DNA of 64,000 bases. It comes from Penicillus capitatus (lineage: Eukaryota; Plantae; Chlorophyta). The position numbers and the translations under genes were made by a program. Every line of letters starts with the position of its first letter. Position 1 is the stretch's first letter. Shown piece after piece: positions 6,456 to 55,141 of the stretch. A model generated the notes under the pieces. That model was not told where the DNA came from. It did no database searches and worked only from the letters and a program-made list of their open reading frames with translations. Where the stretch lies: assembly GCA_965649825.1 (NCBI GenBank), contig OZ287704.1, positions 976,301-1,040,300 on the forward strand. Reading direction: 5' to 3'.

Positions 6456-8728
6456 ATGTGTGACATAAAGAGCAAAACTACTGAGTATGGCGAAGGAAGC
6501 TCCCCTTCGGCACCACCCATATCGGCCGCATTCGGAGGTCTGTCATCTCTGAGTACCACATGAACGCACGAACTTCTGCTTTTGGTAGAAACGGTGTACC
6601 CGTCATGCACTCCGTTGCCTCCAACGAACATGACACTATCAAGTACAGGAGAACGGTTGTCTTGATATCTGTCTCGAGAGTGATAAACAGGGGATAGTCA
6701 TTTGGTGAGAGATTTGTTGCGGAAAGCCGATGGAGATACTGTAAAAGTGGCGAGCTGGTTGGAAACTATGGGTGAAAGTGTGACGCCTGCTGAATTGCAG
6801 AGAGAACTGGAAATGTGTGATATGCATGCTCAAGGCGATGATATCGACACCATCGCCGCTCAGCTGGGAGCACCCGAAACGTACTTCTGTCCAGTTTCAT
6901 TTCATCTCTTTCGAGACCCTGTCCTTCTCCAAACTGGCCAAACGTAACCCTATATCGCATTGTGTAAGACGGCATATCAGCAAAGCGTGATGCAGATATG
7001 AGAGAAGTGTGATTCAACGTTGGTTATCCGAAGGCGGTTCCATCTGTCCCAATACTGGAATCGAGCTTCCAACTCCTGTCGTTCTTACACCGAACGTTGC
7101 TCTGCGCCATGCCATCGAAGAATGGGCGCAGAAATATGCAGAATGGATGCTGGTCTGTCCTCGTCTTGATCGACACCGTCGTTGCTGATGTGGTAGATGC
7201 AGGGACCCAATGGAAGAATATTGCCACTGCCTTCAGATAGGCACAACCGCAATCAGCCGCTGCTGTTCCAGCCAGCCATTACCGAAGGGGTCGAAGAAAT
7301 CCCGATAAGAATTCGAGAAGATGTCAACCACCACCGACGTGGTCGTGCACAGTATCGTCAACACCACATTGAAATGTGACGCACACACTCCACCATCGCA
7401 CTCTTCTCATGGTCGGTCTTCTGTAGGACTCAGTCTCAGTACGACCGCATTCGACGTTGTGTCTTCTTACTCTTTATGATCACCGTCGCGCATTTCGTTC
7501 TCTTTGTTATTACCCTGAATTCAGGGGACTGGAAGGTGAGGAGACAGAATCCCGATGACATGACAGGAGTGCAAACGTGGTTCTGTGATGCAGTTTGCCA
7601 AGATTGATGATAATCCGCTGATTGGATTTGAAGCCAATACGATTCGTCGAACAGGAGGAACGGATACCTATTTGATATCGGAAAGAAATGAATGGTGGAG
7701 AATGGCGACCTCTGCTCTGATGACGAGTGGCATCATTCATTTACAATGGGTGGTGTGTTGTCTCTGGACATGTGGACGATTTCTGGCGGCGCGCATGTCA
7801 TTCGTCTCACTCGGGCTGCTCTACGTGATCAGCTCCCTCTGCGGCGTCCTGCTTTCTGCCAATTTCTCTATCGTCTCTGAAGGAACGGGTGGATCTGCTG
7901 GCGCCTTCGGATTCATTGGTAAGGGAGCCGTGTCGATTGAAGCCGAAATGATGATCGTGATGTGACAGGAGCTGTTATGGTCGAAACGCTTGTTCATCGC
8001 AAGCACTACCGTCATCACTTCACTTCCATTTTCTTCCTGACCCTCATTGCCTCTGTCGGGATCCTGATGGGAACGACGCCGCTTGTGGATAACTGGACAA
8101 ATCTGGGCGGCTTTGTTGGCGGTTTCTCCATGGCCATGGCACTCAGATTGACGCATCGAGCTCTGCAAGGATCTGCTCCCTACATCGAAGGCTTCATGGT
8201 CGTCTTCCAAGTCTTCTGGTTTTTACTCGTCGGCTGTTTTGTCGTTGGCGGATGCATCGGCATCTTCCTCAACAAGGACAGTCGACAAGAGTGCAATTGG
8301 TGTCGGCAGCTCACTTGCGTCGACATGAATTGGTGGGATTGCGATGTCGCTGTCCTTCCTCCCGATGATTATCAGCTCAAATGCGAGTATGATATCAAAG
8401 GCAATCTGACAGCCACCATCCTCTGCCCATCGGTAACGCGCTCGCTCTCTTTTCACGCAGATTTCATTTTTGCGTACAGGGGAGAAATGAAACGGTACAG
8501 TTGGGAGATGCTTCGACAAAGGATCTCAACAGAAAACTCGATCAGGAATGTCAGAAGACGTGTGCCGATACCTCGACACATAACTCCAAGGACAAAAAGT
8601 CCCCCGTTTCAAGTCGCCCTCCTTCTATCCCGATCAACCGACCTCCGGACGCAAATCCAGTGAGATCCGAAGATGATGACGAAAACCAGCTGCGAGAAGG
8701 CAATACCATAATAGACACTCTAGAATAG
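6456..8728 (+). CDS. U-box domain fused to a rhomboid-family membrane domain lacking the catalytic His (predicted pseudoprotease)
   Basis: U-box: PETYFCPVSFHLFRDPVLLQTGQT|YERSVIQRWL...CPNTG...LTPNVALRHAIEEW. It continues in frame via GT-AG introns into rhomboid motifs DNPLIG, EWWR, GGSAGAFG, VDNWTNLGG and CNWCRQLTCV. Confidence 0.85.
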
Positions 8729-9484
8729 AGCAATGAGGTCCCATGATCCTACGGTTGAGGAGGATAGAGGTGTCCGACGTTCACTTGTTTGAACAAAGAT
8801 CGTGTTTCGGAAACATGTAAAACAGACAAGTAGATGGCACGTCATCTCAAGACGCATGCCCATGCTGTGGTCATCATTTGGACTCTGCCAACTCTATCAT
8901 GCTTCTGTAGACAGGCCAACTGCACGGCCGCTGCAGAAACGACATCACACATTGCGTTCCGAATGGTGTCTAGTCATTTTGCTGCTACTGCCGGAATGCA
9001 CTTCGCTGTGAACATCACACGCCATCGTTTATCACACTTATATCACACTTTTCATTTCTCACAGATCATACTGAGTTAGGAACATTTCTTAGGAGACGCA
9101 CATATTTTATAATGCTATCCAGTCCACATCGTTGCACAAGGCGACGCCGATCGACGATGTTGCAAGATCCGTCATTCTTCTGACGAACTTCTGTGGTGTT
9201 TCGCCGCAAGATGAGTCATCCCGCGTCGCTGTTATCCCACCGACTAAAACGAGGTATAGTGACGGGACGCGCAACGATCATTGTATGTTAGACCATCTGA
9301 CATTGTCTGCATTCCACGTCGCACGTGTATTGTTATTCCCATGCGTGACACAAAGAGAAACGAAGTGCATTCGCGTTCGCGTCGTGCCGTCCGTCCACAC
9401 GACAGGCAACACGACGCAAACGGCAACGGACATACGACGCTCGCGGCAACAGAAGAGTCCGGAGGACTCGGTGCGTTCGGTCGT

Positions 9485-12309
9485 ATGAGCATCGACGAAG
9501 ACGAGTTACTCAAATTGCTGAAAAACGAAGTGCCAGGCGAAGATTCGACCTCAGCTGCCGAGAATACCGATTCGCGATCGGTCGAAGACGATATGGCTCG
9601 CGAAAGCTCCGAGTGCTTTGCCGATTTGGAACGGGAACTCTCGGCTGCGCTGAACCGAAGTCAGGAAGAAGAGAATTCAGAACTGCGTCCTCTGACACCG
9701 GAAGATGTCAAAGATGTCTCGAGGACGACAACCCGAGAAGAGACCGTCTCTTCTGGCAGAACGGGAAAAGAATCATCGTCGGCAGATGAGAGCAGCGTGG
9801 AGGGAGAGACTTGTGAGGGCAAGAGAACCAAACGCAAGGCGGAAATGGGATCGAAATCGCCCATGAAGAAAACGAAGTATTATGAAACGAATAATACTGT
9901 ACGGAAGCCGGGATGGGCAGAAGACATGTTAAAAAATCGACCCTCTGTGATGATCTCACAGAAAAATCCAAATCCGTCGTCAACAAGAGCACAGCATCAG
10001 AAAGAACCATTTCATACGAAGAAGACCAGAATCGATCAGGCTTCGATGGAGCCTATTGTTGTTGGAAATGCCTATCACGGAGCACGGCGCAGTGCTCCTG
10101 TGTCCAGAAAGCCAATGATCGACGAGCGTTTTATGCCTCCGGGATGGTTGGACTGTCCAGGTCTCGAAGGCAAATGGGGTATCTTTCTATTCTCCAAGGT
10201 AGAGATGGCATGGATGGGCATTGTTCTCTATGAGAATGTGCATGCCTGTCCAGACGCCTCTGGGAGAGAGATGGAATCATCTGATACCACCCAGCAAGCG
10301 CTATACACCGCAGATGGTTTTGCAGACGGCGGCGAACCGAAGCCAACACGTAGGGCTCGTCTGGACTCTCTCCAGTCTTGCCTATCTGTGTTGTTATTTG
10401 TCAGATTGGTTTGGTCATTGATCTCACCAATTCTTCGCTCTACTACGATCCGTATGAATTCCAGAGGCACGGTGCTCAGTATCACAAGGTTGGATCGTCG
10501 TCCACCGTCTTCCCTTTGGCATGGATCTTGTGGAATGCAGATTCGTTGCCAGGGGCATGGCGCCACTCCAAGTCCGGAAGCTGTCAACGAGTTCTGGTGG
10601 ACGGTCTCCCAATTCGAACGGCGAAGAACGAATCGTTTCATACTGGTCCACTGCACACACGGCTTCAACAGAACAGGCATGTGTCATCTGTCGTGATGCA
10701 TGGTGTGAATAGCAGGGAGTGTTCAGGCTTCATGGTGGCACACTTTACCATGCGTTGGGCTGAGAAAGATACCATCAATGGCATCATCCGAACGTTTGCT
10801 GTACGTAGACCTCCTGGCATCTACAAGAACGAATACATCCAGGAGCTTCTAGAATACTATCACGAACCCAGGTACTCAGAACGCATTCCACGGACTCGTG
10901 GCCAGCGCATCTGGGCAGGAGTTCGAAACTCATCACTCCCTCCGTGCCCGAATGGAAAGGCCTTTCTCATGAGGAGAAAGAAGATGAAGATGCCACAAGG
11001 GAAACAAGCTCACGTTGCTCCGCCCTCCGCCCTCCTCTTTGAGTTTAAGAGGCTGTTGGTTTTGGTTAGGAATGATTGTGCACATGACATCCAGCGAAGC
11101 CATGACACCCGACGATCCAATTGGAGAACGCCTGTTGCCTCGAGAACAGGAGTGTCTGCAGTCTGAGATTCTGACTCTGATGCTGGGCTCTCAGAGGCAT
11201 TACAGTCGATTTCCAGGTGCTCAGCCAGTTTCCATGGATCGCAGTAACCTCGAGCTCCTCGCCAACAAACGGCATTGCCATTCTCAATCGATCTTGCTGT
11301 TGACAATGACTCTGAAGGTACTGGGTGACATACAAGGCAGATGGAACGCGTTACATGTTGTTGCTCATGAAGCATGGCGTGTACGTCATCAACAGAGGCT
11401 TTGAGTTTCAGCGTGTGGAAATGCGATTCCCTGCGGCTTTCAAAAACGATCATACCACCGTCAATCCTGGAATTCCACACCATATGACGCTATTGGATGG
11501 AGAGATGGTCATTGATCACGACCAGGAACGCGGCATCTATACGCGAAAATATCTGGTGTATGATCTGGTATTATATGAAGGTCAATCCTGGATGTCTGTG
11601 CCATGGAAGCAACGCTTTGCTCAGTTGCGCGAGATTGTCAATCTCCGCAATTCAGAAAAATCAATGATCGCAAAGAAACAATCGGCATTTGACTATCAGT
11701 ATCGCGATGAGCCCTTTGAGGTAGAGGCAAAGATGTTCTGGTGCATGGGTCAAGTCGAAGGAATCGTAAAAACCATACCAACGCTGAAGCATGAGTGTGA
11801 CGGGTTCATTTTCCAAGCCTATTGGGATAACTACAAAGTGGGCACACATGAGGAGCTTCTCAAATGGAAGTACGCCCACATGAACTCCGTCGATTTTCGC
11901 TACAGTTACGAAATCAATTCAGAGCGTGAGTCCCTCTACCGCCGCCATGCGCCGCCTTTGATTTCTGTGCCTTCCAGATGACGGGCAGGTTTTTCTGTTG
12001 AACAGGACAGAGGTATTGTGTGATGGGGTCAACGTGGATTTCCCGAATGAGGGGGATAAAGAGAGGTACAATGGAAAGATCATCGAGTGTGCCTATAATC
12101 AACAGACAAATCGATGGATCTTTCTGAGAGAAAGAGTGGACAAGAAGTCGCCAAATGCTTACAGTGTCTACGAGAAAGTGCTCAAAAGCATCAGGGACAA
12201 CATCACCCAGCAGGAGCTTGTGAATAGAATGCTAGATCTGTTTACCGAGTCTGCTATCTATGCTCAAGACAGAGAGAAATTGGCAAATTACAATCCTGTT
12301 AAAAATTAG
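9485..12309 (+). CDS. RNGTT: mRNA capping enzyme (RNA 5'-triphosphatase plus guanylyltransferase)
   Basis: Triphosphatase motifs PPGWLDCP, LVIDLTN and VHCTHGFNRTG. GTase motifs YKADGTRY, LLDGEM, DGFIF, LLKWK, KIIEC and RERVDK. TAG stop at 12307-12309. Confidence 0.95.
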
Positions 12310-26909: not shown

Positions 26910-29900
26910 ATGCCAACGTTCTGTTGTCGACTATTCTGTAGCATGCATCTTTATCGATGCTATTATACTTTGCTCTGTCTGTTGCTATGGAGTCGTCTAA
27001 CCATCCTGACGTCATCGTCAGCCACCGAAGAAGGTACCTGTTCGAGTGAACTAGGTGCAGAGAACATCTCTGAGGGAGGGCAGCAGTACATCGTCCGCTT
27101 TCGCGAATACCGGAGGGCAGCACACTGGAGACGAGCACTGGAAGCTGTCTTAAGCGAAGATGGGTCGCAGTGGAAATGGGTCGAGCGACACAACGCAGCT
27201 GCCTCGTTTCCGACAGACTTCGGCGTCGTGCGATTCCAGACAGCCTCTGCAGAAACCGTGCAGGTAGATCTGAATCGACTTCTCAGTGGTCCTTGGTGGG
27301 ACGTCGGAGTCGTATAGGAACGCATACTCAAGCTGCCTTTTGTCAGAGACGTCCACCCAGACCGTCTGCTGCACCGGAGTCTGGCACACGTCGCGGAGGA
27401 AGAAGAGGGACATCGGGAGTGCAAGATTCAGAAGCCTCCAGGTCGATTCCGTACCCGTCCGACTTTCGGGATCGACAGCGAGGACGACGACTACACGTAT
27501 GGATCGGATTCCGAAGACCGGGCAGAGCTGAGGAGGAAGAGGATGCTCCTAAAAACCGGCCGCCGATCGGTGACGCGAATGCTGCACGCGGACGAGATCT
27601 GGAATCTGGGATACTCGGGCGAAAAGGTCAAGGTGGGCGTTTTCGACACCGGCATCCGAGCAAACCACCCCCACGTCAAGAACATCAAGGAACGCACGAA
27701 CTGGACCCACCAGAACACGCTGAGCGACGGATTGGGACATGGCTCGTTCGTGGCAGGCGTCATCGCCGGAATCTACGATGGATGTCTTGGATTCGCTCCG
27801 GACGTCGAGCTCTACACGTTCAAAGTGTTCACGGACGACCAGGTCTCCTACACGTCCTGGTTCATGGACGCCTTCAACTACGCCATCGTCTCGAAGATGC
27901 AGATCGTCAACCTGAGCATCGGCGGGCCGGACTTCCTCGATCAACCATTCGTCGAGAAGGCGAGATCGCTAGATGCAGTCGCAGTTCTCATGCCTTTTCA
28001 CTCCGCAGGTGCTTGAGGTCACATCGAGTGGGATCATCATGACGGCTGCCATCGGAAACGATGGACCTCTGTACGGGACGCTGAACAACCCGGCTGATCA
28101 GAACGATGTCATCGGAATCGGAGGTATCACCTTCGAGGATCGCATGGCGCGTTTCTCGTCGAGGGGGATGTCGACCTGGGAGCTGCCGATCGGCTACGGT
28201 CGCATCAAGCCGGATGTGCTGGCATACGCCCAGGACGTGAGCGGCTCGAGGATGCAGGACGGGTGCAAGAGCCTGTCGGGAACGAGCGTGGCGTCTCCCG
28301 TCGCCGCAGGGGCTGTGGCTCTGTTGGCCAGCACCGTTCCCGAAGGCGCTCGGTGGAGCCTGCTCAATCCGGCCTCGATGAAGCAGGCCCTGGTCGAGGG
28401 CGCCTCTCGGCTGGACGGCGAGACGGTCTACGTTCAGGGGGCCGGAAAGATCGACCTCGTCCGGTCCATGCAGATCCTGCAGAGCTACGAGCCCCGGGCC
28501 TCCCTCGTTCCCGGCAGCCTGGATCTGACCGACTGCCCGTACATGTGGCCCCTCTGCTCGCAGCCTCTCTATGCCGACGCCGTCCCGGTGATCGTCAACG
28601 CCACGATCCTGAACGGCATCAGCGTCACCGGCGTCCTAGAAGGGGTGCCGGAGTTCGCTCCCTCCAACAAGGCAGGAGAGCTCGTCTCCATGGACTTCGA
28701 GTACAGCGACGTCCTGTGGCCCTGGTCGGGCTACCTGGCCGTCTACGTCCGAGTCCAGTCCGCTGGACGATCCTACTCGGGCGTCGCCGAGGGAGAGATC
28801 CGCTTCACCGTCGTCGCTCCCCCGGTCGAGGGCGAGAGGGGGGAGAGGAAGTCCACTGTCCGAGTGCCGTTCAAGGCGAGGATCGTTCCGAAGCCTCCCC
28901 GAGAGAAGAGGGTGCTCTGGGACCAGTTCCACTCCGTCAAGTATCCGCCCGCCTACTTCCCGCGAGACAACCTCGACGTGCAGAGAGACATCTTGGACTG
29001 GCACGGAGACCACCCGCACACCAACTTCCACGACATGTTCGACCACCTGCGAGACAGGGGTTACTACCTGGAGGTCCTGGGTTCTCCCTACACCTGCTTC
29101 AACGCATCACAGGTCCTGCCTGCCGGACGGCGTCCGGCACACTGCTGACTCCATTCGCTGTAGTACGGGGCGCTGATGATCGTCGACTCCGAAGACGTCT
29201 TCTATCCGGAGGAGGTCGCAAAACTGGCTGCGGATGTGAGGGAAGAGGGACTCGGCGTCATCGTCTTCGCGGAGTGGTACAATGCCAAGACGGCCACGGA
29301 CTTCCGCTTCTTCGATGACAACACGCGCAGCTGGTGGACTCCCGCCACGGGAGGCGGCAACATCCCTGGCCTGAACGACCTGCTTGGCCAGTTTGGGATT
29401 GCCTTCGGGGACGCCGTCCTCAAAGGGACCCAGTCGATCGGCGGCCAGCGCGGGGTGAAGTACTCCTCTGGGGCCAACATTGCAAGGCTGCCTGCTGGCA
29501 GCTTTGCCCACCACTTCTCTCTGGAGGAAACGTCCAAGGAGACCAGCTCCTTCGGCGACTACTACACTCTGGGCCTGACCGCCCATGGGAACGGCAGACT
29601 GGCCGTCTACGGAGATTCCAACTGCCTGGACTCCAGTTACCAGTCGGATCACTGCTTCGAGCTGCTCGATGCGATGCTGGACTTTGTGAACGAGAACGAA
29701 GACAACAGCCTTCTGCAGAGTCTGACAGGCGAGGATCACATACTGAAGGCATCTCTGGACGCAGAGGATCTTCCGCAGCCGATCGAAGACGTCAACTTCA
29801 CAGAGTTCTCTTTTGTCATGAGCCATCCATTACAGTGCTACATGAACCATCCCATCATGGAGATCAACGACGCGCCAGTGAACCGGTCCGACATGGAAAT

Positions 29901-37005: not shown

Positions 37006-38823
37006 GTGGGGAGTTTCAATAACTTAAGCGATTCAGGGTCTGGCCGCATCCTGGCAGGCGAGGCACACAGTGCTGGAGCGTGGGCATTGATGTCTATGGT
37101 CAACAGCGTGACAGTTGTCTCGCGATCAGAGCAGAACCTCGGCCATATGGAGATCTGCAACTTCAATCAACTCACACCCAAGGCACTGGATCTCGTCCGA
37201 GACATTGCATCTGGTTTCGAGAGCGGATTATCACCGGAACGTGGAGAAGAGGGATTCGGTGGCACGTATTTCGTTTCGAACAAACATCGACAAAAGGTTG
37301 CGATTTTTAAACCGTGCGATGAGGAGCCTTTGGCACCTTGCAACCCCAAAGGCTTTGTTGGTCGATCTTTGGGAGACCCGGGTCTGAAGCCGACGGTACG
37401 TGTTGGTGAAGCAGCTTTGAGAGAGGTGGCGGCTTACTTGTTGGATCGTCATCAGTTTGCCAAGGTGCCAACGACTCTGCTGATGCGTGCCAGTCATCCT
37501 GCTTTTAATTATGTACCTGGAGTAGATTCGTCTGGATCCTTGAACGTGTCGCTCTTCTCTGAAGGGGTGTCGTCACAGTTAGATGCTGCAAGACTGCCTA
37601 TGAAACTTGGCTCAGTTCAGGAATTTGTTACGCATCTCTGTGACACAACAGAGATGGGCACATCGAAGTTCACGACAGCCGATGTGCAACGTATCGCCAT
37701 TTTGGACATTCGTTTGTACAACACAGATCGCCACGCTGGCAACATTCTTGTACGAAAAGTCGATGCCAGTCACTCAGCAGAGCCCTTCAAAGAGACAGGC
37801 TTTGAGCTCATCCCGATCGACCATGGCTTTTGCCTTCCCGAAGCTTTGGAGCCTCCGTACTTTGAATGGCAACATTGGTCACAGGCACGATTGCCTCTGG
37901 GGCAGGAAGAGCTGGAATACATTGCCTCTATTGATATCGAAGCCGAGAAGGCGATGTTACGTAAAGAGTTGCCAGTGTTGCGCGAAGAGTCTCTCAGAAC
38001 GATGGAAGTGTCTACTACTCTTCTGAAGAAATGTGCAGCCGCTGGGCTGTCTCTTCATGAAATTGCTGAAATCATGACACGTCCATTGGTCGGAATGGAC
38101 GAAGAGAAATCCGACCTCGAAAAAATCTGTCTCGAAACGAAGGAAGAAGTCATGTCGGCTGCCGTGACTGGATTAGAAATAAGTTGGATATCATCATCAT
38201 CTGACTGCGAGTCCGATGAGTTAGAAAGCAACGAAACGACAACAGCCACTCCAACACGCATAGATGAACTGCTGTTTTGCATAGATGATTTGAAAGAGCT
38301 GGAATCGTCTATCATGATGAATGCCACCGGATCGAACGGACTGTCTACCGATGCAGCAACGGAAACAGTCGTGGCAATGGTTGAGCAGGGACTCGTCGAG
38401 GAGTGCTTACTGGAACAACTGTCCTTGGAGTGTGAGGGGCACCCAATTGCTGAGCCAATTGTGATCAACGTGGGATTAAGGAAAGGCCAAAGATCAATGT
38501 CAATGGCTCTCCCCTCTTCCACTGTCTGTTGCCGACTGCCTAAACGTGGTTATGGTCAACACACCCGACCTGAACATCGTCCTTCTTCTGGGAGTCCCAA
38601 GCAAGGAGAGACAAAAGTTACCTATCCACCTCTCGTTCACGGATCAGCTCCTGGAAGTTCTGATGACGTCTTTCGCTACATGAGCTCAGATCAGTGGAAG
38701 TGCTTCATGGAGGTGCTGTGTGATAAAATTGACGATGGAATAAAGCAGGGAAAATGGGTTTCACATGACATCAAGACCCGTTCCATGTCTATGAATTTGG
38801 GCATTTCCTGTCCCCGTTTCTGA
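37006..38823 (+). CDS. PI4KG: Type II phosphatidylinositol 4-kinase gamma (PI4K-gamma), no N-terminal UBL domain; true start may be ATG 37090
   Basis: GFGGTYF, IFKPCDEEP, EAALREVAAYLLD, KLGSVQEFV, LDIRLYNTDRHAGNIL and PIDHGFCLPE in one 605-aa ORF. Confidence 0.93.
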   Translation: MGSFNNLSDSGSGRILAGEAHSAGAWALMSMVNSVTVVSRSEQNLGHMEICNFNQLTPKALDLVRDIASGFESGLSPERGEEGFGGTYFVSNKHRQKVAIFKPCDEEPLAPCNPKGFVGRSLGDPGLKPTVRVGEAALREVAAYLLDRHQFAKVPTTLLMRASHPAFNYVPGVDSSGSLNVSLFSEGVSSQLDAARLPMKLGSVQEFVTHLCDTTEMGTSKFTTADVQRIAILDIRLYNTDRHAGNILVRKVDASHSAEPFKETGFELIPIDHGFCLPEALEPPYFEWQHWSQARLPLGQEELEYIASIDIEAEKAMLRKELPVLREESLRTMEVSTTLLKKCAAAGLSLHEIAEIMTRPLVGMDEEKSDLEKICLETKEEVMSAAVTGLEISWISSSSDCESDELESNETTTATPTRIDELLFCIDDLKELESSIMMNATGSNGLSTDAATETVVAMVEQGLVEECLLEQLSLECEGHPIAEPIVINVGLRKGQRSMSMALPSSTVCCRLPKRGYGQHTRPEHRPSSGSPKQGETKVTYPPLVHGSAPGSSDDVFRYMSSDQWKCFMEVLCDKIDDGIKQGKWVSHDIKTRSMSMNLGISCPRF

Positions 38824-40787: not shown

Positions 40788-41756
40788 ATGGCACCTGAAG
40801 CTGCTGCAGAGGGATACTATATGACACCGTGCTGCGGTGAGGCAGATATGTCTGGATATTCCAGAACGTCTTCGCCGGATCCAAACGTGTTCTACGACGG
40901 TCACGAAGATAAGCGCGCATACACCGACGGTCGCTGCGCAGGCTCGCAGTATCATTCATGGCCGACACCGGCAGGCTTTACAGCTTATCCGTCAAACGAC
41001 GCAAAGACATACGCACCGTCGCCTTACAGTATGCCGCCACATGGAGTTCCACCAATGCCAGTGCACATGCCATCTGTCCCCTACGGACACGGCGCCGCCG
41101 GACAAATGGTAGCACCACAACCGCCAATGTTTGGCGTGCAAGCTCCACGGACTCCAACACGCACTCGTGCAGACATTACTGATACGTCCTCATCAAATTG
41201 CACTCCGAGAGACCACTATTCGACGGCTATGGATCGACCATCTCCCGTGAAGAGACATGCCCGCAAGCATGATGCTGGACCTCGATTCCCAGTCGTCAAA
41301 ATTCCGGAGGGATTGAAGAAGCAAGGAGGACAACCATCACCAGCGACGTGGCTGAACATGAGAGGCTTCCCACTCAGAGCTGGCAAGCCTGACTGCAAGC
41401 ATTACACTACAAAGGGATGGTGCGCATATGGAACACTCTGCAAATTCAACCACCCGGATAACATGCCAGCGGCAACGATGCCCTATGGGATGGTGCCCTG
41501 CGTTCCTGGATCCCAACCGATGGTAATGAATGGACCCTGGATGGGACTTCACTACCAGTGGAACGGACCATGGAACCAGCATCATCATCAGTCATCGCCT
41601 GCCGTCCCGCATGCCTATCCCCCATACATGTGCCATCCCTGCCATTCCGGCCCTTGCAGTACAGAGTCTGGACATACTGCGATTTCGCATTCGGATGGAA
41701 GAGAGCATGAAAAGGTCACAGTCGACACGGAAACCAGTGCCATGATGTATCATTGA
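40788..41756 (+). CDS. CCCH-type zinc-finger protein (single C-x8-C-x5-C-x3-H finger) in a Pro/Met/Tyr-rich low-complexity context
   Basis: FPLRAGKPDCKHYTTKGWCAYGTLCKFNHP, the plant C3H RNA-binding finger type. Confidence 0.85.
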   Translation: MAPEAAAEGYYMTPCCGEADMSGYSRTSSPDPNVFYDGHEDKRAYTDGRCAGSQYHSWPTPAGFTAYPSNDAKTYAPSPYSMPPHGVPPMPVHMPSVPYGHGAAGQMVAPQPPMFGVQAPRTPTRTRADITDTSSSNCTPRDHYSTAMDRPSPVKRHARKHDAGPRFPVVKIPEGLKKQGGQPSPATWLNMRGFPLRAGKPDCKHYTTKGWCAYGTLCKFNHPDNMPAATMPYGMVPCVPGSQPMVMNGPWMGLHYQWNGPWNQHHHQSSPAVPHAYPPYMCHPCHSGPCSTESGHTAISHSDGREHEKVTVDTETSAMMYH

Positions 41757-42753: not shown

Positions 42754-45706
42754 TTAGACTAATGGATCATGCGACACGGGACGTTCCCGCAGACCGACAA
42801 TGTTGTTTGTTGCAACTGGTTCCACATCCTCCCCATGATCCACACCTTCGCCTCTCTTCTCTATTGCCTGGGGATGAATCGCATCTTCAAAGCTATACAT
42901 CTGAATCTGATCATCCACTGTCTGCCCAGCATTCCCTGCATCAAAGGATTGGGTACTGTAGTCAAATCGTGGCAAGTTTGGCGAAGAAGCAGATCTCCGT
43001 GTATCTATTGCAGGTTCGGTTGGCTGAATCGCCAGTGTGGTTCGTCCCAACGATGGATAGTCAATGCGATTGACGGGGTCCTGTTCGTCATCTGTATCCG
43101 GAATGTCTTGCTCCAGCTGCTGGGGCTTATAGACCACATTTACGCTGTCTAGGTTTCGCTCGGCAGATGTCGATGACAAGAAATACTTCTCTAGGTTTAT
43201 TCCCAGGAACAATTCAATCTGCGCCTGACGATCATTATCTTTGATGATGTTGTTGTATCGTCGCGTGATGGCAATGAAAGAATTCGACGCCCCACTAACG
43301 GTATTCTTCTTGAGCTGGCTGGACTGAGGCTCAAAGATCGTGATCTTGTCAGAATGCATGGCTTGCGATCCGGTGTAGAAGAAAGCATTGCGATCTCCGT
43401 TTTGCAGGAAGACATCGGCAATGCTCGAGAGCGCTTCTGGTAAAACCTTTCTGCGAATCTCATCCACTGTTGCTTCTAACATCGACCAGGCTTCTTTCGA
43501 CAGGATCTCTTCTTTGCAGACGACCCTGAAGGACTTCTTGCTTTCCAAAGAAGTTCTACCGCCTTCAACAGAAGGCTCCGTATCGTCCGGCGGCGGAGAC
43601 CATGTCGTTCTCTTATTCACATGATCGATGTAGTACGTGCATCCCGACACCTCGTCGATCCGAGCTTCCCAGCCAACAGGAAGCGCCTGGCGAAACTGCA
43701 CCTTTGGACGTCGGTGTGAGCGACCAGTCGGTGCGGGCCACGACGGCTTGACATTTTGGCTGGGACTCTGAGACGTGGCAGATCCGGGAAGCAATCCACC
43801 AAACAATCGTTCCCTCAATGTGGGCTTTGCCCGGGGAGGATCTTCCGCTATCTCATCATCCCTTGTCAACACTGCCAACTCGAGTCGGCGACATTGTTCC
43901 ACAAAGACCTGTACCACAGTACTGAAAACGGCGCCGTGGCAAAAGAAACGGACGCACTTGAACGCTAATAAAAAAACTTGCAATGTTGGTTCGATCCAAG
44001 GAATCTGCACAGTTGTACCGCGTGAGCCCTTGTTGCTGTGCACACCAGTGCATTGTGTGCTCTCCAAGCCACTTGGTCTTGGGTGCATCATCCTCTAGAA
44101 TGGCACACAGTTGTCGTAGACATCGCCGACAGGGACATTACTGGAAGGTTGCTTGGAGTAATATCCAGAAGCGAGGCCATGAGCTTGTAGCATTCCTCTC
44201 ATTGTTGTCCACAGGGCTTCAATCAGTCCATGCGTTCCTAGTTGCTTGTCCATTTCATGCCAGTCCAGAGCATAGTAATCGGCCTTCAGCTGGTGCATCT
44301 TTCTTATACTGGAAAGCGCCGTGTCAAAAGCAGCAGCAAGATTAGTTTCTGATCTATTTTTATCAGGGAGTCCTTTTCGCAAGAGACTCACGAAAACGAT
44401 CGGAAATCTGTCAGAAGTCTTCTCCTTTTCGGTCGTTTCCTTCAATTTCTCTTCGATTTCGGGCTTCGGCGAAAAACGCTTCTGCAGTCTTCGAATGTAT
44501 CTGTGAGATGGATTCGTGTATGACCACATCATCATCGAACAGAAAGAGATGCTCACCTCTTACAACCTGCAAACGTTTTTTGCTTTCTTATCACGATTTC
44601 TGCTTCGCCCAATCCGCTGTTCTTGAGATAGACTCCCCAACGGATCGGCACTGTTCCTCGTCTCCACGAGTATCGATTCCACAGTGCCTTTCCGGTATGT
44701 TTGTCTTCTGGTCTCCAGACAATCTGTTCGCATTCGATTTCGTTTCCTGGTTCGCAGAGATCGTTCAATCCACGGGCAATGTAACGGGTTCCGGGGTTCA
44801 GCCGCGATCGACGTGAGAGCAGAACCAAATTGAACGGATCGCCCATTCCATCCTCGAGCTCCCTCGATTCTGCTGTGCCTTGCATCAGAGGGGGACAGCA
44901 ATCATCCAGACAGACAGAACGAAAAGACTCTGTAAGCCATGCATTCCACGTAAACTGCCAAGAGGGTTCTGTGGTCGCATGCTGCGAAGGGAAGGGCCTT
45001 GTCACATCAGCATCTGCACAGTACCAATGCGCTCCGTTGACAGAGAATTCCACAATCTTATTGATATGACCCTCCAACATCTCAAAGTTCACGGTAGCTT
45101 CGTTCTGAACATCATTCGGCAGATCTGCCTAAAGAAAACAGTTCAAGCCCAATTGAGGATAGAGATGAGGATCGCACCTGACAAGGAATTCTGTGCCAAC
45201 GTGCAGCTGTCACTGTCTTGATGCGAACATCTCCAGGGAGAAGAGCCGAGACGCGAGCACGCTCGACCAACAGTAGCAGTCCTGTATTTCCTATCACTGT
45301 GTAACCCAACACAGCTTCACCCTTTCCTTCGACCTACATAACGATGCCTCCCTTCAGGCAGACGAGCAGAAGTGATAACAGACGCACTTGTGCTTGCCCC
45401 TGTCCTTTCAGATACTCTAAAGCCTCATCCTGTCGGTCAGCCTGTGAGCAGGAATGGACGCTGTTGACTTTAATGGCCAACCTTGTTTGGAAAGATGTCA
45501 AGTCCGGGTGTTTGAGTATATTGCAACGCCCCTGAGAGCGAGTCAAAACGCACGAGCACGACGTCCTTTCTAGAATCCACCATGTACCGTCTACTGTTGA
45601 ACACGCCAAGGGCTGACCTCTTGGTACGCGAGATGAGCAGAAAATGTTGCTGTGTTGCTTCGAGGCGGTAGAGCACAACAGCGTCATTCTGCGCCGTGGC
45701 ACTCAT
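42754..45706 (-). CDS. SAC9: SAC-domain phosphoinositide phosphatase with WW domain (SAC9 type)
   Basis: SRRSRLNPGTRYIARGLN, EIECEQIVW, RRGTVPIRWG, the SAC9-type catalytic RYNCADSLDRTN, and WW LPVGWEARIDEVSGCTYYIDHVNKRTTWSPP. Confidence 0.92.
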
Positions 45707-51752: not shown

Positions 51753-54700
51753 TCACGTCGCATTAGATGATACGGACGATGATGTTTGGCGGCGCCGGCG
51801 CGTTAATCTATAAAGACCGAACATTGCAAGAATACCCAGCAAAGCACTCCACTTGGACACAATGAGTGGAGGCGTCCAGTTCACAAAACCTACAACACCA
51901 TTGTATCAATCTTTTTGTTGACATGGCAGATTACCCTGAGGCACACCGAAGGTCAATACAGCAGATTTTTCACTGCTATATGGTGCTCTGCTCAAAAATA
52001 AAAAGCGTCGAAGACATTGTGTATGGTGAAGAAGGCATTACTTATTTGCTCCGAGGATGGATGATTGTTTGGCTGAAAATGGCTCCCCGAAGACATCCGT
52101 TACTTTTCTTCCAGAATCTAACAGGTCGTCTGAACCTTTGTCTTCCAGTTCTTTTACCTCCATTAGGTCGTTGATCTCCATGATGGGATGGTTCATGTAG
52201 CACTGTAAGGGATGGCTCAGGACAAAAGAGAACTCTGTGAAGTTGACGTCTTCGATCGGCTGCGGAAGATCCTCTGCCTCCAGAGATGCCTTCAGTATGT
52301 GATCCTCGCCTGTCAGACTCTGCAGAAGGCTGTTGTCTTCGTTCTCGTTCACAAAGTCCAGCATCGCATCGAGCAGCTCGAAGCAGTGATCCGACTGGTA
52401 ACTGGAGTCCAGGCAGTTGGAATCTCCGTAGACGGCCAGTCTGCCGTTCCCATGGGCGGTCAGGCCCAGAGTGTAGTAGTCGCCGAAGGAGCTGGTCTCC
52501 TTGGACGTTTCCTCCAGAGAGAAGTGGTGGGCAAAGCTGTCAGCAGGCAGCCTTACAATGTTGGCCCCAGAGGAGTACTTCACTCCGCGCTGGCCGCCGA
52601 TCGCCTGGGTCCCTTTGAGGACGGCGTCCCCGAAGGCAATCCCAAACTGGCCAAGCAGGTCGTTCAGGCCAGGGATGTTGCCGCCTCCCGTGGCGGGAGT
52701 CCACCAGCTGCGCGTGTTGTCATCGAAGAAGCGGAAGTCCGTGGCCGTCTTGGCATTGTACCACTCGGCGAAGACGATGACGCCGAGTCCCTCTTCCCTC
52801 ACATCCGCGGCCAGTTTTGCAACCTCCTCCGGATAGAAGACGTCTTCGGAGTCGACGATCATCAGCGCCCCGTACTACAGCGAATGGAGTCAGCAGTGTG
52901 CCGGACGGCGTCCGGCAGGCAGGACCTGTGATGCGTTGAAGCAGGTGTAGGGAGAACCCAGGACCTCCAGGTAGTAACCCCTGTCTCGCAGGTGGTCGAA
53001 CATGTCGTGGAAGTTGGTGTGCGGGTGGTCTCCGTGCCAGTCCAAGATGTCTCTCTGCACGTCGAGGTTGTCTCGCGGGAAGTAGGCGGGCGGATACTTG
53101 ACGGAGTGGAACTGGTCCCAGAGCACCCTCTTCTCTCGGGGAGGCTTCGGAACGATCCTCGCCTTGAACGGCACTCGGACAGTGGACTTCCTCTCCCCCC
53201 TCTCGCCCTCGACCGGGGGAGCGACGACGGTGAAGCGGATCTCTCCCTCGGCGACGCCCGAGTAGGATCGTCCAGCGGACTGGACTCGGACGTAGACGGC
53301 CAGGTATCCCGACCAGGGCCACAGGACGTCGCTGTACTCGAAGTCCATGGAGACGAGCTCTCCTGCCTTGTTGGAGGGAGCGAACTCCGGCGCCCCTTCC
53401 AGGACGCCGGTGACGCTGATGCCGTTCAGGATCGTGGCGTTGACGATCACCGGGACGGCGTCGGCATAGAGAGGCTGCGAGCAGAGGGGCCACATGTAGG
53501 GGCAGTCGGTCAGATCCAGGCTGCCTGGAACGAGGGAGGCCCGGGGCTCGTAGCTCTGCAGGATCTGCATGGACCGGACGAGGTCGATCTTTCCGGCCCC
53601 CTGAACGTAGACCGTCTCGCCGTCCAGCCGAGAGGCGCCCTCGACCAGGGCCTGCTTCATCGAGGCCGGATTGAGCAGGCTCCACCGAGCGCCTTCGGGA
53701 ACGGTGCTGGCCAACAGAGCCACAGCCCCTGCGGCGACGGGAGACGCCACGCTCGTTCCCGACAGGCTCTTGCACCCGTCCTGCATCCTCGAGCCGCTCA
53801 CGTCCTGGGCGTATGCCAGCACATCCGGCTTGATGCGACCGTAGCCGATCGGCAGCTCCCAGGTCGACATCCCCCTCGACGAGAAACGCGCCATGCGATC
53901 CTCGAAGGTGATACCTCCGATTCCGATGACATCGTTCTGATCAGCCGGGTTGTTCAGCGTCCCGTACAGAGGTCCATCGTTTCCGATGGCGGACACCATG
54001 ATGATCCCACTCGATGTGACCTCCAGCACCTGCGGAGAGAAGAGGCATTGAGAACTGCGACTGCCTCTAGCGATCTCGCCTTCTCGACGAATGGTTGATC
54101 GAGGAAGTCCGGCCCGCCGATGCTCAGATTGACGATCTGCATCTTCGAGACGATGGCGTAGTTGAAGGCGTCCATGAACCAGGACGTGTAGGAGACCTGG
54201 TCGTCCGTGAACACCTTGAACGTGTAGAGCTCGACGTCCGGAGCGAATCCAAGACATCCATCGTAGATTCCGGCGATGACGCCGGCCACGAACGAGCCAT
54301 GTCCCAATCCGTCGCTCAGCGTGTTCTGGTGGGTCCAGTTCGTGCGTTCCTTGATGTTCTTGACGTGGGGGTGGTTTGCTCGGATGCCGGTGTCGAAAAC
54401 GCCCACCTTGACCTTTTCGCCCGAGTGTCCCAGATTCCAGATCTCGTCCGCGTGCAGCATTCGCGTCACCGATCGGCGGCCGGTTTTTAAGAGGCTCCTC
54501 TTCCTCCTCAGCTCTGCCCGGTCTTCGGAATCCGATCCATACGTGTAGTCGTCGTCCTCGCTGTCGATCCCGAAAGTCGGACGGGTACGGAATCGACCTG
54601 GAGGCTTCTGAATCTTGCACTCCCGATGTCCCTCTTCTTCCTCCGCGACGTGTGCCAGACTCCGGTGCAGCAGACGGTCTGGGTGGACGTCTCTGACAAA

Positions 54701-55141
54701 AGGCAGCTTGAGTATGCGTTCCTATACGACTCCGACCTCCCACCAAGGTCCGCTGCGAAGTCGATTCAGATCTACCTGCACGGTTTCTGCAGAGGCTGTC
54801 TGGAATCGCACGACGCCGAAGTCTGTCGGAAACGAGGCAGCTGCGTTGTGTCGCTCGACCCATTTCCACTGCGACTCGTCGTCGCTTAAGACAGCTTCCA
54901 GTGCTCGTCTCCAGTGTGCTGCCCTCCGGTATTCGCGAAAGCGGACGATGTACTGCTGTCCTCCCTCAGAGATGTTCTCTGCACCTAGTTCACTCGAACA
55001 GGTACCTTCTTCGGTGGCTGACGATGACGTCAGGATGGTTAGACGACTCCATAGCAACAGACAGAGCAAAGTATAGAAGCATCGATAAAGATGCATGCTA
55101 CAGAATAGTCGACAACAGAATGGAACACGAAACGTTTCCAA
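51753..55141 (-). CDS. SBT6.1: Site-1 protease (S1P / SBT6.1), copy B
   Basis: Same catalytic motifs as copy A (VFDTG, LGHGSF, MVSAIGNDGP, GTSVASP). Different 3' exons end in SKWSALLGILAMFGLYRLTRRRRQTSSSVSSNAT*. Confidence 0.95.
52167..55120 (-). repeat. Right arm of the ~2.95-kb inverted repeat (partner 26919-29871)
   Basis: Reverse complement of the left arm with scattered substitutions and a 1-nt longer GC-AG intron (50 vs 49 nt). Confidence 0.95.

Follow-up and report, generated by a model that had tools for sequence, protein, structure and literature searches.

We report a gene of the green alga Penicillus capitatus that encodes a ubiquitin-ligase U-box and a rhomboid pseudoprotease in one polypeptide. 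The gene lies at 6456-8728 on the forward strand of a 64,000-nt stretch of contig OZ287704.1, and "the window" below means this whole stretch. Judged by its sequence, the rhomboid part misses two defining features of active rhomboid proteases, the catalytic histidine of the sixth transmembrane helix (TM6) and the oxyanion asparagine of TM2. The same architecture is conserved among green algae with the catalytic dyad lost in nearly every member, and the dead rhomboid is still under strong purifying selection. Our preferred reading, which draws on analogy with known pseudoproteases and in which we have moderate confidence, is that the gene would encode a polytopic membrane ubiquitin ligase (E3) whose pseudo-rhomboid recognises the transmembrane segments of its clients. 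The green-algal family probably tags membrane proteins for disposal.

Gene model and domain architecture

The gene model was built from the genomic sequence together with homology to relatives. The window is eukaryotic nuclear DNA with a GC content of ~50% and very short introns, and no Rfam match to an RNA family was found anywhere in it. The gene and its segments are as follows (all on the + strand; aa, amino acid residues of the product; pLDDT, predicted local distance difference test score; P0001, a relative whose structure was modelled).

6456-8728: whole gene, 9 exons, 621-aa product; the spliced reading frame is open, and its translation can be aligned with 12 relatives from end to end
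6456-6537, 6589-6642, 6691-6943, 6996-7152, 7203-7375, 7427-7535, 7594-7918, 7969-8432, 8480-8728: exons 1-9
6693-6770: conserved N-terminal helical segment DSHLVRDLLRKADGDTVKVASWLETM, aa 47-72; conserved family-wide, helices in the P0001 model with pLDDT 60-69
6870-7134: U-box, aa 106-176, split by intron 3 (6944-6995); Pfam PF04564
7150-7439: linker, aa 182-244, predicted cytosolic; from alignments
7455-7523: TM1, aa 250-272; hydropathy peak 2.7, long helix in the P0001 model
7687-8144: rhomboid core, aa 308-443; Pfam PF01694 and column comparison with 154 relatives
7696-7701: WR motif, aa 311-312; intact
7738-7740: TM2 H325; His kept
7750-7752: TM2 V329, replacing the oxyanion Asn of HxxxN; from column comparison
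7888-7899: TM4 GGSA (G375-G-S377-A), with S377 at 7894-7896; the GxSx serine is present
8085-8111: TM6 VDNWTNLGG, aa 424-432, with N429 at 8100-8102; Asn in the catalytic His column
8109-8123: TM6 GxxxG, G432-x3-G436; intact
8202-8276: TM7, aa 463-487, the additional C-terminal helix that 6+1-TM eukaryotic rhomboids have; hydropathy peak 2.48, helix 459-495 in the P0001 model
8292-8563: Cys-rich tail, aa 493-567, predicted luminal or exoplasmic, split by intron 8 (8433-8479); 8 conserved Cys

All eight introns are of the GT-AG type and 47-58 nt long, and each contains stops or a frame shift. The coding sequence (CDS) of 1,866 nt is open throughout. The ATG at 6456 is preceded by an in-frame TAA, the N-terminal product (…GSSPSAPPI…) matches the N-termini of the relatives in the alignment, and the last base of the TAG stop codon is 8728; the start and the stop given in the earlier note, made by a model from the sequence alone, were thus found correct on re-reading. 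Homology to the relatives (…SLSRDSNLVRDLL) was the guide for placing the two N-terminal introns, 6538-6588 and 6643-6690, which bring back the conserved segment …TLSRDSHLVRDLL…. The three exon junctions named in the earlier note, EWML/GPNGR (7152/7203), HIE-AT/G-TQSQ (7375/7427), and WK/FAKIDDNP (7535/7594), are canonical GT-AG junctions with introns of 50, 51, and 58 nt. An alternative start, an ATG near 6487 followed by a 160-nt intron, was out of frame and was discarded for the model that starts at 6456.

As the earlier note had claimed, a complete U-box shares one reading frame with the rhomboid: both Pfam domains are present in the spliced product, and the rhomboid is of the 6+1-TM type without the TM6 His. 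The U-box matches PF04564 with 56.9 bits (cut-off 21.4, E=2.3e-15, profile positions 1-70 of 73). Among PDB sequences it matches GmPUB13 (7c96, complexed with an effector) and OsPUB12/CIE1 (7xed, complexed with OsUBC8) with E of 1e-16 to 1e-14, and its identity to the solved plant U-boxes, with or without a ubiquitin-conjugating enzyme (E2), is 44-48%. The core of the domain (CP-hydrophobic, DPV, GxTYER, W, CPxT, LxPN, and W) is present when compared residue by residue with 7c96_B and 7xed_C and is invariant in the family; the majority of the family's invariant alignment columns lie inside the U-box. The rhomboid matches PF01694 with 70.7 bits (cut-off 22.6, E=1.9e-19, profile positions 2-140 of 143).

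Seven membrane helices are seen by hydropathy, and the RIRR directly before TM1 fits a signal anchor with its N-terminus inside. The U-box needs a cytosolic N-terminus, and with seven helices this places the 137-residue tail after TM7 in the lumen or outside the cell. We therefore predict a cytosolic N-terminal third and a luminal or exoplasmic tail. This placement fits the pattern of conserved cysteines and the sequons. The tail contains 8 Cys, of which C523, C537, C563, and C567 are invariant and C493, C496, C501, and C509 are at least 90% conserved in the family alignment; it also contains NLT and NET sequons (NLT at 8403-8411), and NxT/NxS is kept at the first sequon in some relatives.

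The linker between the U-box and TM1 has a conserved D-x-ALAIRLQEEE helix in the relatives. This acidic helix (xxxDxDxALAIRLQExE) is found in P0001-P0012 and P0016, with D, A, and Q invariant. The window version is degenerate (EEIPIRIRED, 7287-7328), and a Pro replaces the invariant Ala. We take the helix to be similar to the MIU/inverted-UIM consensus, although Pfam and PDB searches gave no support for this: UIM, MIU, or UBA-type motifs were sought in the N-terminal, linker, and tail segments with Pfam at E≤10 and nothing relevant was found, and a profile of the linker helix had no match in the PDB. The N-terminal segment (aa 47-72) likewise has no Pfam match in a scan at E≤10.

The fusion is found as one gene in other green algae

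The joining of two domains across short introns could in principle be a product of the gene model, with neighbouring U-box and rhomboid genes connected only by predicted splicing, or the locus could be a decaying pseudogene. The linker is the least conserved part of the protein, and the window protein is without the linker helix motif, as such an explanation would allow. However, the eight introns are canonical and uniform in size, the CDS is open over its full length, and the linker exons align with those of the relatives. The relatives themselves also have the same arrangement. With the spliced protein as query, a word-index search gave 12 proteins with both Pfam domains, at a coverage of 66-99% and an identity of 32-62%. 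When aligned end to end, the window protein is 52-60% identical to P0001-P0005 and 32-39% identical to the rest (59-60% to the Logan contigs, 53% to Caulerpa lentillifera, and 39% to Bryopsis and Ostreobium).

Three of the Logan contigs (L001, L004, and L005, ~2 kb each) contain little beyond one uninterrupted ORF (open reading frame) of 608-617 codons, at 43-1896 in L001. They are most likely transcript assemblies, since they have no introns at the intron sites of the window gene. A fourth contig, L003 (4,077 nt), is genomic, with other genes on the opposite strand and two small in-frame introns near the 5' end, and it has the U-box, linker, rhomboid, and tail in one continuous ORF (538-2247). 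A single gene is also found in separate annotations of Bryopsis sp. KO-2023 (BSKO_07438), Coccomyxa subellipsoidea C-169 (XP_005648970.1 / I0Z1A7), Ostreobium quekettii (CAD7695299.1), Botryococcus braunii, Apatococcus, Elliptochloris, and Auxenochlorella protothecoides (XP_011401143.1), and in EukProt or MMETSP entries of Caulerpa lentillifera, Tetraselmis astigmatica, Pyramimonas parkeae, and P. obovata. The segment order is therefore identical in single ORFs of four organisms and in seven annotations. Because these uninterrupted ORFs and separate annotations show one gene, a two-gene artefact is very unlikely, and we give hardly any credence to artefact and gene decay together. They also answer, indirectly, the objection of two separate transcripts that the earlier note had named as a refutation.

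We note that P0005, the called protein of L003 (Logan SRR2835676), begins too late: the conserved N-terminus, MDEPKKLDSSNEGIIPSAPP… and …SHLSRDVYLVRDLL, lies upstream in frame, in the region 1-540 of L003, and is broken by a short stretch containing stops. The insert TQNYCFQIFDFCLD in P0005 looks like a retained in-frame intron.

Loss of catalytic residues in the window protein and its family

Rhomboid proteolysis requires a Ser-His dyad. In the window protein, the TM6 position of the catalytic His is an Asn (N429), in the motif VDNWTNLGG. This was claimed in the earlier note and holds both on re-reading and in the alignment columns: the same column is His in 98 of 118 rhomboid-only relatives in the same hidden Markov model (HMM) alignment. 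No other alignment brings the His back, since the next one (LRLTH) lies 18 residues downstream, at the opposite end of the helix. The missing Asn of the HxxxN segment is likewise borne out, with H325 kept and V329 in the place of the Asn. The earlier note had also cited GGSA as a sign of inactivity. The sequence and its position are right, but the interpretation is not: S377 is retained and only the fourth position of the motif differs. The TM4 region reads GGSAG in the window protein and GASGG in its closest relatives, and a GxSA variant is also found in a dyad-intact relative, P0020 (GSSA with CHLGG). The case for inactivity is therefore based on the TM6 His-to-Asn change and the lost oxyanion Asn and not on GGSA.

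To place these changes in the family, a HMMER profile of 13 members was searched against 1.84 billion cluster representatives, giving 450 matches at E≤1e-30. Five segment HMMs were made from the family alignment, and the scan with them covered the best 150 of the 450 matches and those found earlier. Within this set, U-box and rhomboid occur together in about 36 clusters at 50% identity, most of which also have the linker and the Cys-rich tail. The other scanned matches are rhomboid-only proteins, many with the same tail; the tail HMM matches most rhomboid-only relatives. All five segment HMMs match the window protein in the order of the family, namely N-terminal helix, U-box, linker, 6+1-TM rhomboid, and tail. 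The named U-box-rhomboid members are all green algae (Caulerpa, Ostreobium, Bryopsis, Coccomyxa, Botryococcus, Auxenochlorella, Tetraselmis, and Pyramimonas). The catalytic columns of 36 U-box-bearing and 118 rhomboid-only proteins were read from one rhomboid-HMM alignment.

Ser and His both kept: U-box-bearing 2/36; rhomboid-only 98/118
TM2 oxyanion Asn kept: U-box-bearing 4/36; rhomboid-only 104/118
WR motif kept: U-box-bearing 35/36; rhomboid-only 86/118

The contrast in Ser and His gives a Fisher p of 9e-18, which is descriptive, since the members share ancestry and p ignores kinship. GxxxG is kept in 22 of the 36 U-box-bearing members. The residues are lost differently from lineage to lineage. 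Ser is kept and His is changed to Asn in the window protein, P0001-P0006, Caulerpa, and Bryopsis; Ser is kept and His is changed to Ala in the Ostreobium group; and in the trebouxiophytes Ser is changed to Thr, Ala, or Pro, with His kept or lost (GATA in Botryococcus, GPAA in Apatococcus, and GAPA in Elliptochloris and Coccomyxa). Such lineage-specific losses fit a relaxation of selection on catalysis only.

Both Ser and His are kept by only two U-box-bearing members: P0020 (Logan, from a Tetraselmis-like clade), which has HxxxN, GSSA, and CHLGG, and P0034 (Pyramimonas parkeae, MMETSP0058), which has AGSA and AHIGG. By their residues, these two may be protease-ligase fusions that are active, and may offer a view of the ancestral state. 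A rough neighbor-joining (NJ) distance tree built from the rhomboid domains puts the active rhomboid-only proteins in one clade and leaves the U-box-bearing proteins as the remainder, with the window protein nested in the group of Caulerpa and P0001-3; this topology is compatible with one origin of the fusion. A possible history, which we put forward tentatively and regard as less probable than not, is that the fusion arose in an ancestral chlorophyte, between a U-box and a secretase-type rhomboid protease that was active, that the P0020 and P0034 lineages keep the dyad of this ancestor, and that several independent losses of catalysis followed, with selection continuing to act on the fold, the U-box, and the luminal tail.

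The intact members raise the question of whether the window protein is itself still a protease, with Ser377 acting through a non-canonical base and the U-box ubiquitinating the cleavage products, comparable to the active ERAD rhomboid RHBDL4, which couples cleavage to ubiquitin recognition. Ser377, the TM2 His325, WR, and GxxxG are all kept in the window protein, and with the full dyad in P0020 and P0034 the ancestral fusion may have been active. We nevertheless give this explanation a slim chance. Asn or Ala stands in place of the TM6 His in the whole Bryopsidales group, and the oxyanion Asn is missing; other members are without the Ser (GPAA, GAPA, or GATA) and yet stay conserved overall; and, to our knowledge, no rhomboid works without the TM6 His, either GlpG or a eukaryotic one.

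It is worth noting that seven short rhomboids of 274-419 aa (P0039, P0040, P0043, P0044, P0070, P0090, and P0113), in which a U-box was undetected, also have Asn in place of the TM6 His (for example VDNSGNTAG). They form a clade that adjoins the Bryopsidales fusion group in the NJ tree and could be a dead paralogue line or truncated gene models.

Purifying selection and fold of the pseudo-rhomboid

The ratio of nonsynonymous to synonymous substitution (omega) was calculated by the Nei-Gojobori method from the coding sequences of the relatives P0001 and P0003, for which the synonymous distance (dS) is 0.83 overall and not saturated (0.6-1.5 by region). Omega is 0.08 in the rhomboid, 0.02 in the U-box, 0.05 in the Cys-rich tail, 0.13 in the linker, and 0.17 at the extreme C-terminus, and other close pairs are in agreement with these values. 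The low omega of the rhomboid indicates that it is under strong purifying selection even without its catalytic residues.

The structure was modelled for P0001, which is 59-61% identical to the window protein and has the same TM6 Asn, with a 13-sequence alignment. The mean pLDDT of the model is 61, with 70-90 in most membrane helices and the U-box. The six-helix core, WR, and GxxxG of the rhomboid fold are all present, the fold itself being assessed on P0001. A Foldseek search of the model against the PDB placed iRhom1 and iRhom2 (in ADAM17 complexes) first, with E of 4.5e-6 to 4.7e-5, followed by U-boxes of PUB proteins with target TM-scores of 0.65-0.83; E. coli GlpG was matched with target TM-scores mostly ~0.7 and up to 0.75. 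The PDB sequence search is in agreement with these matches.

The iRhom matches suggest another function for the family. The dead rhomboid might bind one client, such as a sheddase, receptor, or transporter, and escort or regulate it along the secretory pathway, while the U-box mainly controls the turnover of the complex or of the protein itself and not quality control at large. The rhomboid part has its best structural and PDB sequence matches in iRhom1/2 with ADAM17; like the iRhoms, it derives from 6+1-TM secretase-type rhomboids by loss of catalysis; a Cys-rich tail is common to both, and the conserved luminal tail could be a specific binding surface. On the other hand, iRhoms are without a ligase domain and are marked by a long regulatory N-terminus, a GPxG motif, and, between TM1 and TM2, a large Cys-rich iRhom homology domain. 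In the window protein, the L1 loop is only about 40-47 residues long and contains no Cys, hence no iRhom homology domain; the long regulatory N-terminal domain of the iRhom type is absent; and GGSA lacks the Pro of GPxG. The fused E3 domain, at an omega of 0.02, points to ubiquitination as a core activity. We consider an iRhom-like role unlikely, although it keeps an appreciable share of our confidence.

Comparison with known pseudoproteases and ligases

Among known systems, the window protein would work most like the yeast Dsc2-Tul1 pair merged into one chain, with a U-box for the RING. Dsc2 is a rhomboid pseudoprotease that senses short transmembrane domains for the Golgi Tul1 RING ligase complex (PMC11513148). 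The Dsc complex (Tul1 RING ligase, Dsc2, Dsc3, and Ubx3) thus also pairs an E3 with a dead rhomboid that senses the transmembrane domains of clients, in post-ER (endoplasmic reticulum) quality control of membrane proteins (PMC11513148). However, its ligase and pseudoprotease are separate polypeptides and its RING is at the C-terminus of a 7-TM protein; Dsc2 has a UBA domain and is Derlin/UBAC2-like and not of the secretase type, whereas the window protein has its U-box on the same chain, N-terminal to the rhomboid.

Derlins (Der1, Dfm1, and Derlin-1/2/3) work with Hrd1, Doa10, or gp78. In Dfm1 and Derlin-1, membrane substrates bind to the WR-bearing L1 loop, and TM2 causes thinning of the bilayer at the TM2-TM5 gate; WR as well as GxxxG is needed for Derlin/Dfm1 retrotranslocation, and the binding of substrates depends on WR (PMC8641752). 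Both motifs are kept in the window protein. Derlins bind membrane clients, thin the bilayer, and pass the clients on to an E3 and to Cdc48 (PMC8641752), which makes them a further likely parallel. Unlike it, Derlins have six TMs, have lost all catalytic residues, match Pfam DER1, and have SHP boxes in place of an E3 domain; the window protein matches PF01694 and has a seventh TM and a luminal Cys-rich tail, the last by prediction. Pfam at E≤0.01 reported neither DER1 nor UBA in it. With a Rhomboid and not a DER1 domain, seven predicted TMs, and no SHP box or UBA, the window protein is by sequence not a Derlin, Dsc2, or UBAC2.

The U-box itself is of the type of the PUB E3 ligases GmPUB13 and OsPUB12/CIE1, with the identity and core residues described above. 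In PUBs, by contrast, the U-box is paired with soluble ARM repeats, kinase, or other domains (as in P0013-P0015), and none of those characterised is a membrane rhomboid. RHBDL4/RHBDD1 is also reported to tie a rhomboid fold directly to the ubiquitin system for the degradation of membrane proteins; it differs in being an active protease that reads ubiquitin via a C-terminal UIM, whereas the window protein would be a writer, with the U-box at its N-terminus and no catalytic His.

Proposed function of the fusion

We propose the following sequence of events, in which the topology, the E3 activity, the client recognition, the compartment, and the fate of the client are what we infer. The cytosolic N-terminal third, including the U-box, would recruit a charged E2. 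The linker of ~65 residues would tether the U-box to a seven-helix (6+1) rhomboid fold that would be without proteolysis, owing to the TM6 His-to-Asn and TM2 Asn-to-Val changes, and in which the WR loop motif and the TM6 GxxxG are still present; after TM7, a tail rich in disulfides would lie on the luminal or exoplasmic side. By analogy with Dsc2-Tul1, with Derlin/Dfm1 and Hrd1/Doa10, and with iRhoms, the dead rhomboid would bind client transmembrane segments at a lateral gate, and local thinning of the bilayer by the rhomboid fold may contribute. The attached U-box would then ubiquitinate cytosolic lysines of the client, leading to proteasomal extraction or vacuolar sorting. The reading of the protein as a substrate recogniser with its own ligase, which the earlier note had suggested, is better grounded now because family-wide loss of the dyad is found together with purifying selection.

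The following points weigh against this membrane-ligase reading. GxxxG is present in just 22/36 members, and a Derlin-like mechanism may thus not hold for the family as a whole. In the window protein, a Pro breaks the linker helix that is conserved in the relatives and possibly binds ubiquitin. Self-regulation, and not client tagging, could equally be the role of the U-box. Finally, the predicted structure is that of a ~61%-identical relative, with a mean pLDDT of 61.

Other features of the window

The next long ORF downstream, 9281-10696 (+), ends in …FILVHCTHGFNRTGMCHLS, a Cys-phosphatase P-loop (HCxxGxxR). We assume that this P-loop resembles the triphosphatase domain of mRNA-capping enzymes; the ORF as listed has no Pfam match, probably since the motif sits at an exon end. 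Other ORFs in the window encode a PI3/PI4-kinase domain (37006-38823, +), a CCCH zinc finger (40788-41756, +), and a WW domain (42754-44091, -), with no evident functional link to the U-box-rhomboid gene. No conservation of the neighbourhood was found relative to the Bryopsis locus L002, where the neighbours are a sugar transporter and an acid phosphatase.

An inverted repeat of ~2.95 kb (26919-29871 and 52167-55120) has arms that are 98-99% identical and ~22.3 kb apart. Each arm contains a coding region for a site-1-protease (MBTPS1/S1P-like subtilase), with 99% identical ORF products, and both arms are in locally GC-rich (~0.60) stretches. The repeat could be a recent inverted duplication or an assembly artefact.

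Possible implications for membrane proteostasis in green algae

The architecture can be found in public databases from the Coccomyxa C-169 genome onwards, under automatic names such as 'U-box-domain-containing protein' and 'RHOMBOID-like protein'. The earlier note did not know it from characterised proteins and had raised the prospect that it is common and already described. It is indeed common in Chlorophyta and present in databases, but no description or characterisation of the U-box-rhomboid fusion was found in the full-text literature searched (mostly without subscription journals), including a 2025 review of the rhomboid superfamily, a review of plant proteolysis, and a paper on ubiquitin networks.

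Rhomboid pseudoproteases (Derlins, Dsc2, UBAC2, and iRhoms) are thought to serve degradation or trafficking machines as their 'eyes' within the membrane. The ligase is a polypeptide of its own, one subunit of a larger complex, in all the studied cases that we know of, and it is therefore difficult to tell which part does what. A natural, conserved fusion of a ligase with a dead rhomboid would be independent evolutionary evidence for the partnership of ligase and pseudoprotease, although no surprise in principle. It would also provide a one-gene system for testing in which way a rhomboid fold picks its transmembrane clients, whether extraction needs more than membrane thinning, and what the luminal tail contributes, and the dyad-intact members allow a comparison of protease-coupled with pseudoprotease-coupled ligases.

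If an ancestral active fusion did lose catalysis repeatedly, these proteins would be self-contained, single-polypeptide machines for membrane-protein degradation. Their 'Rosetta-stone' series would then indicate that a ligase needs client recognition, and not cleavage, from the rhomboid fold, and they would offer a minimal system for reconstituting rhomboid-assisted ubiquitination and extraction. For the green algae, from Pyramimonas to the trebouxiophytes and the siphonous seaweeds, the family would represent an unstudied component of membrane proteostasis.

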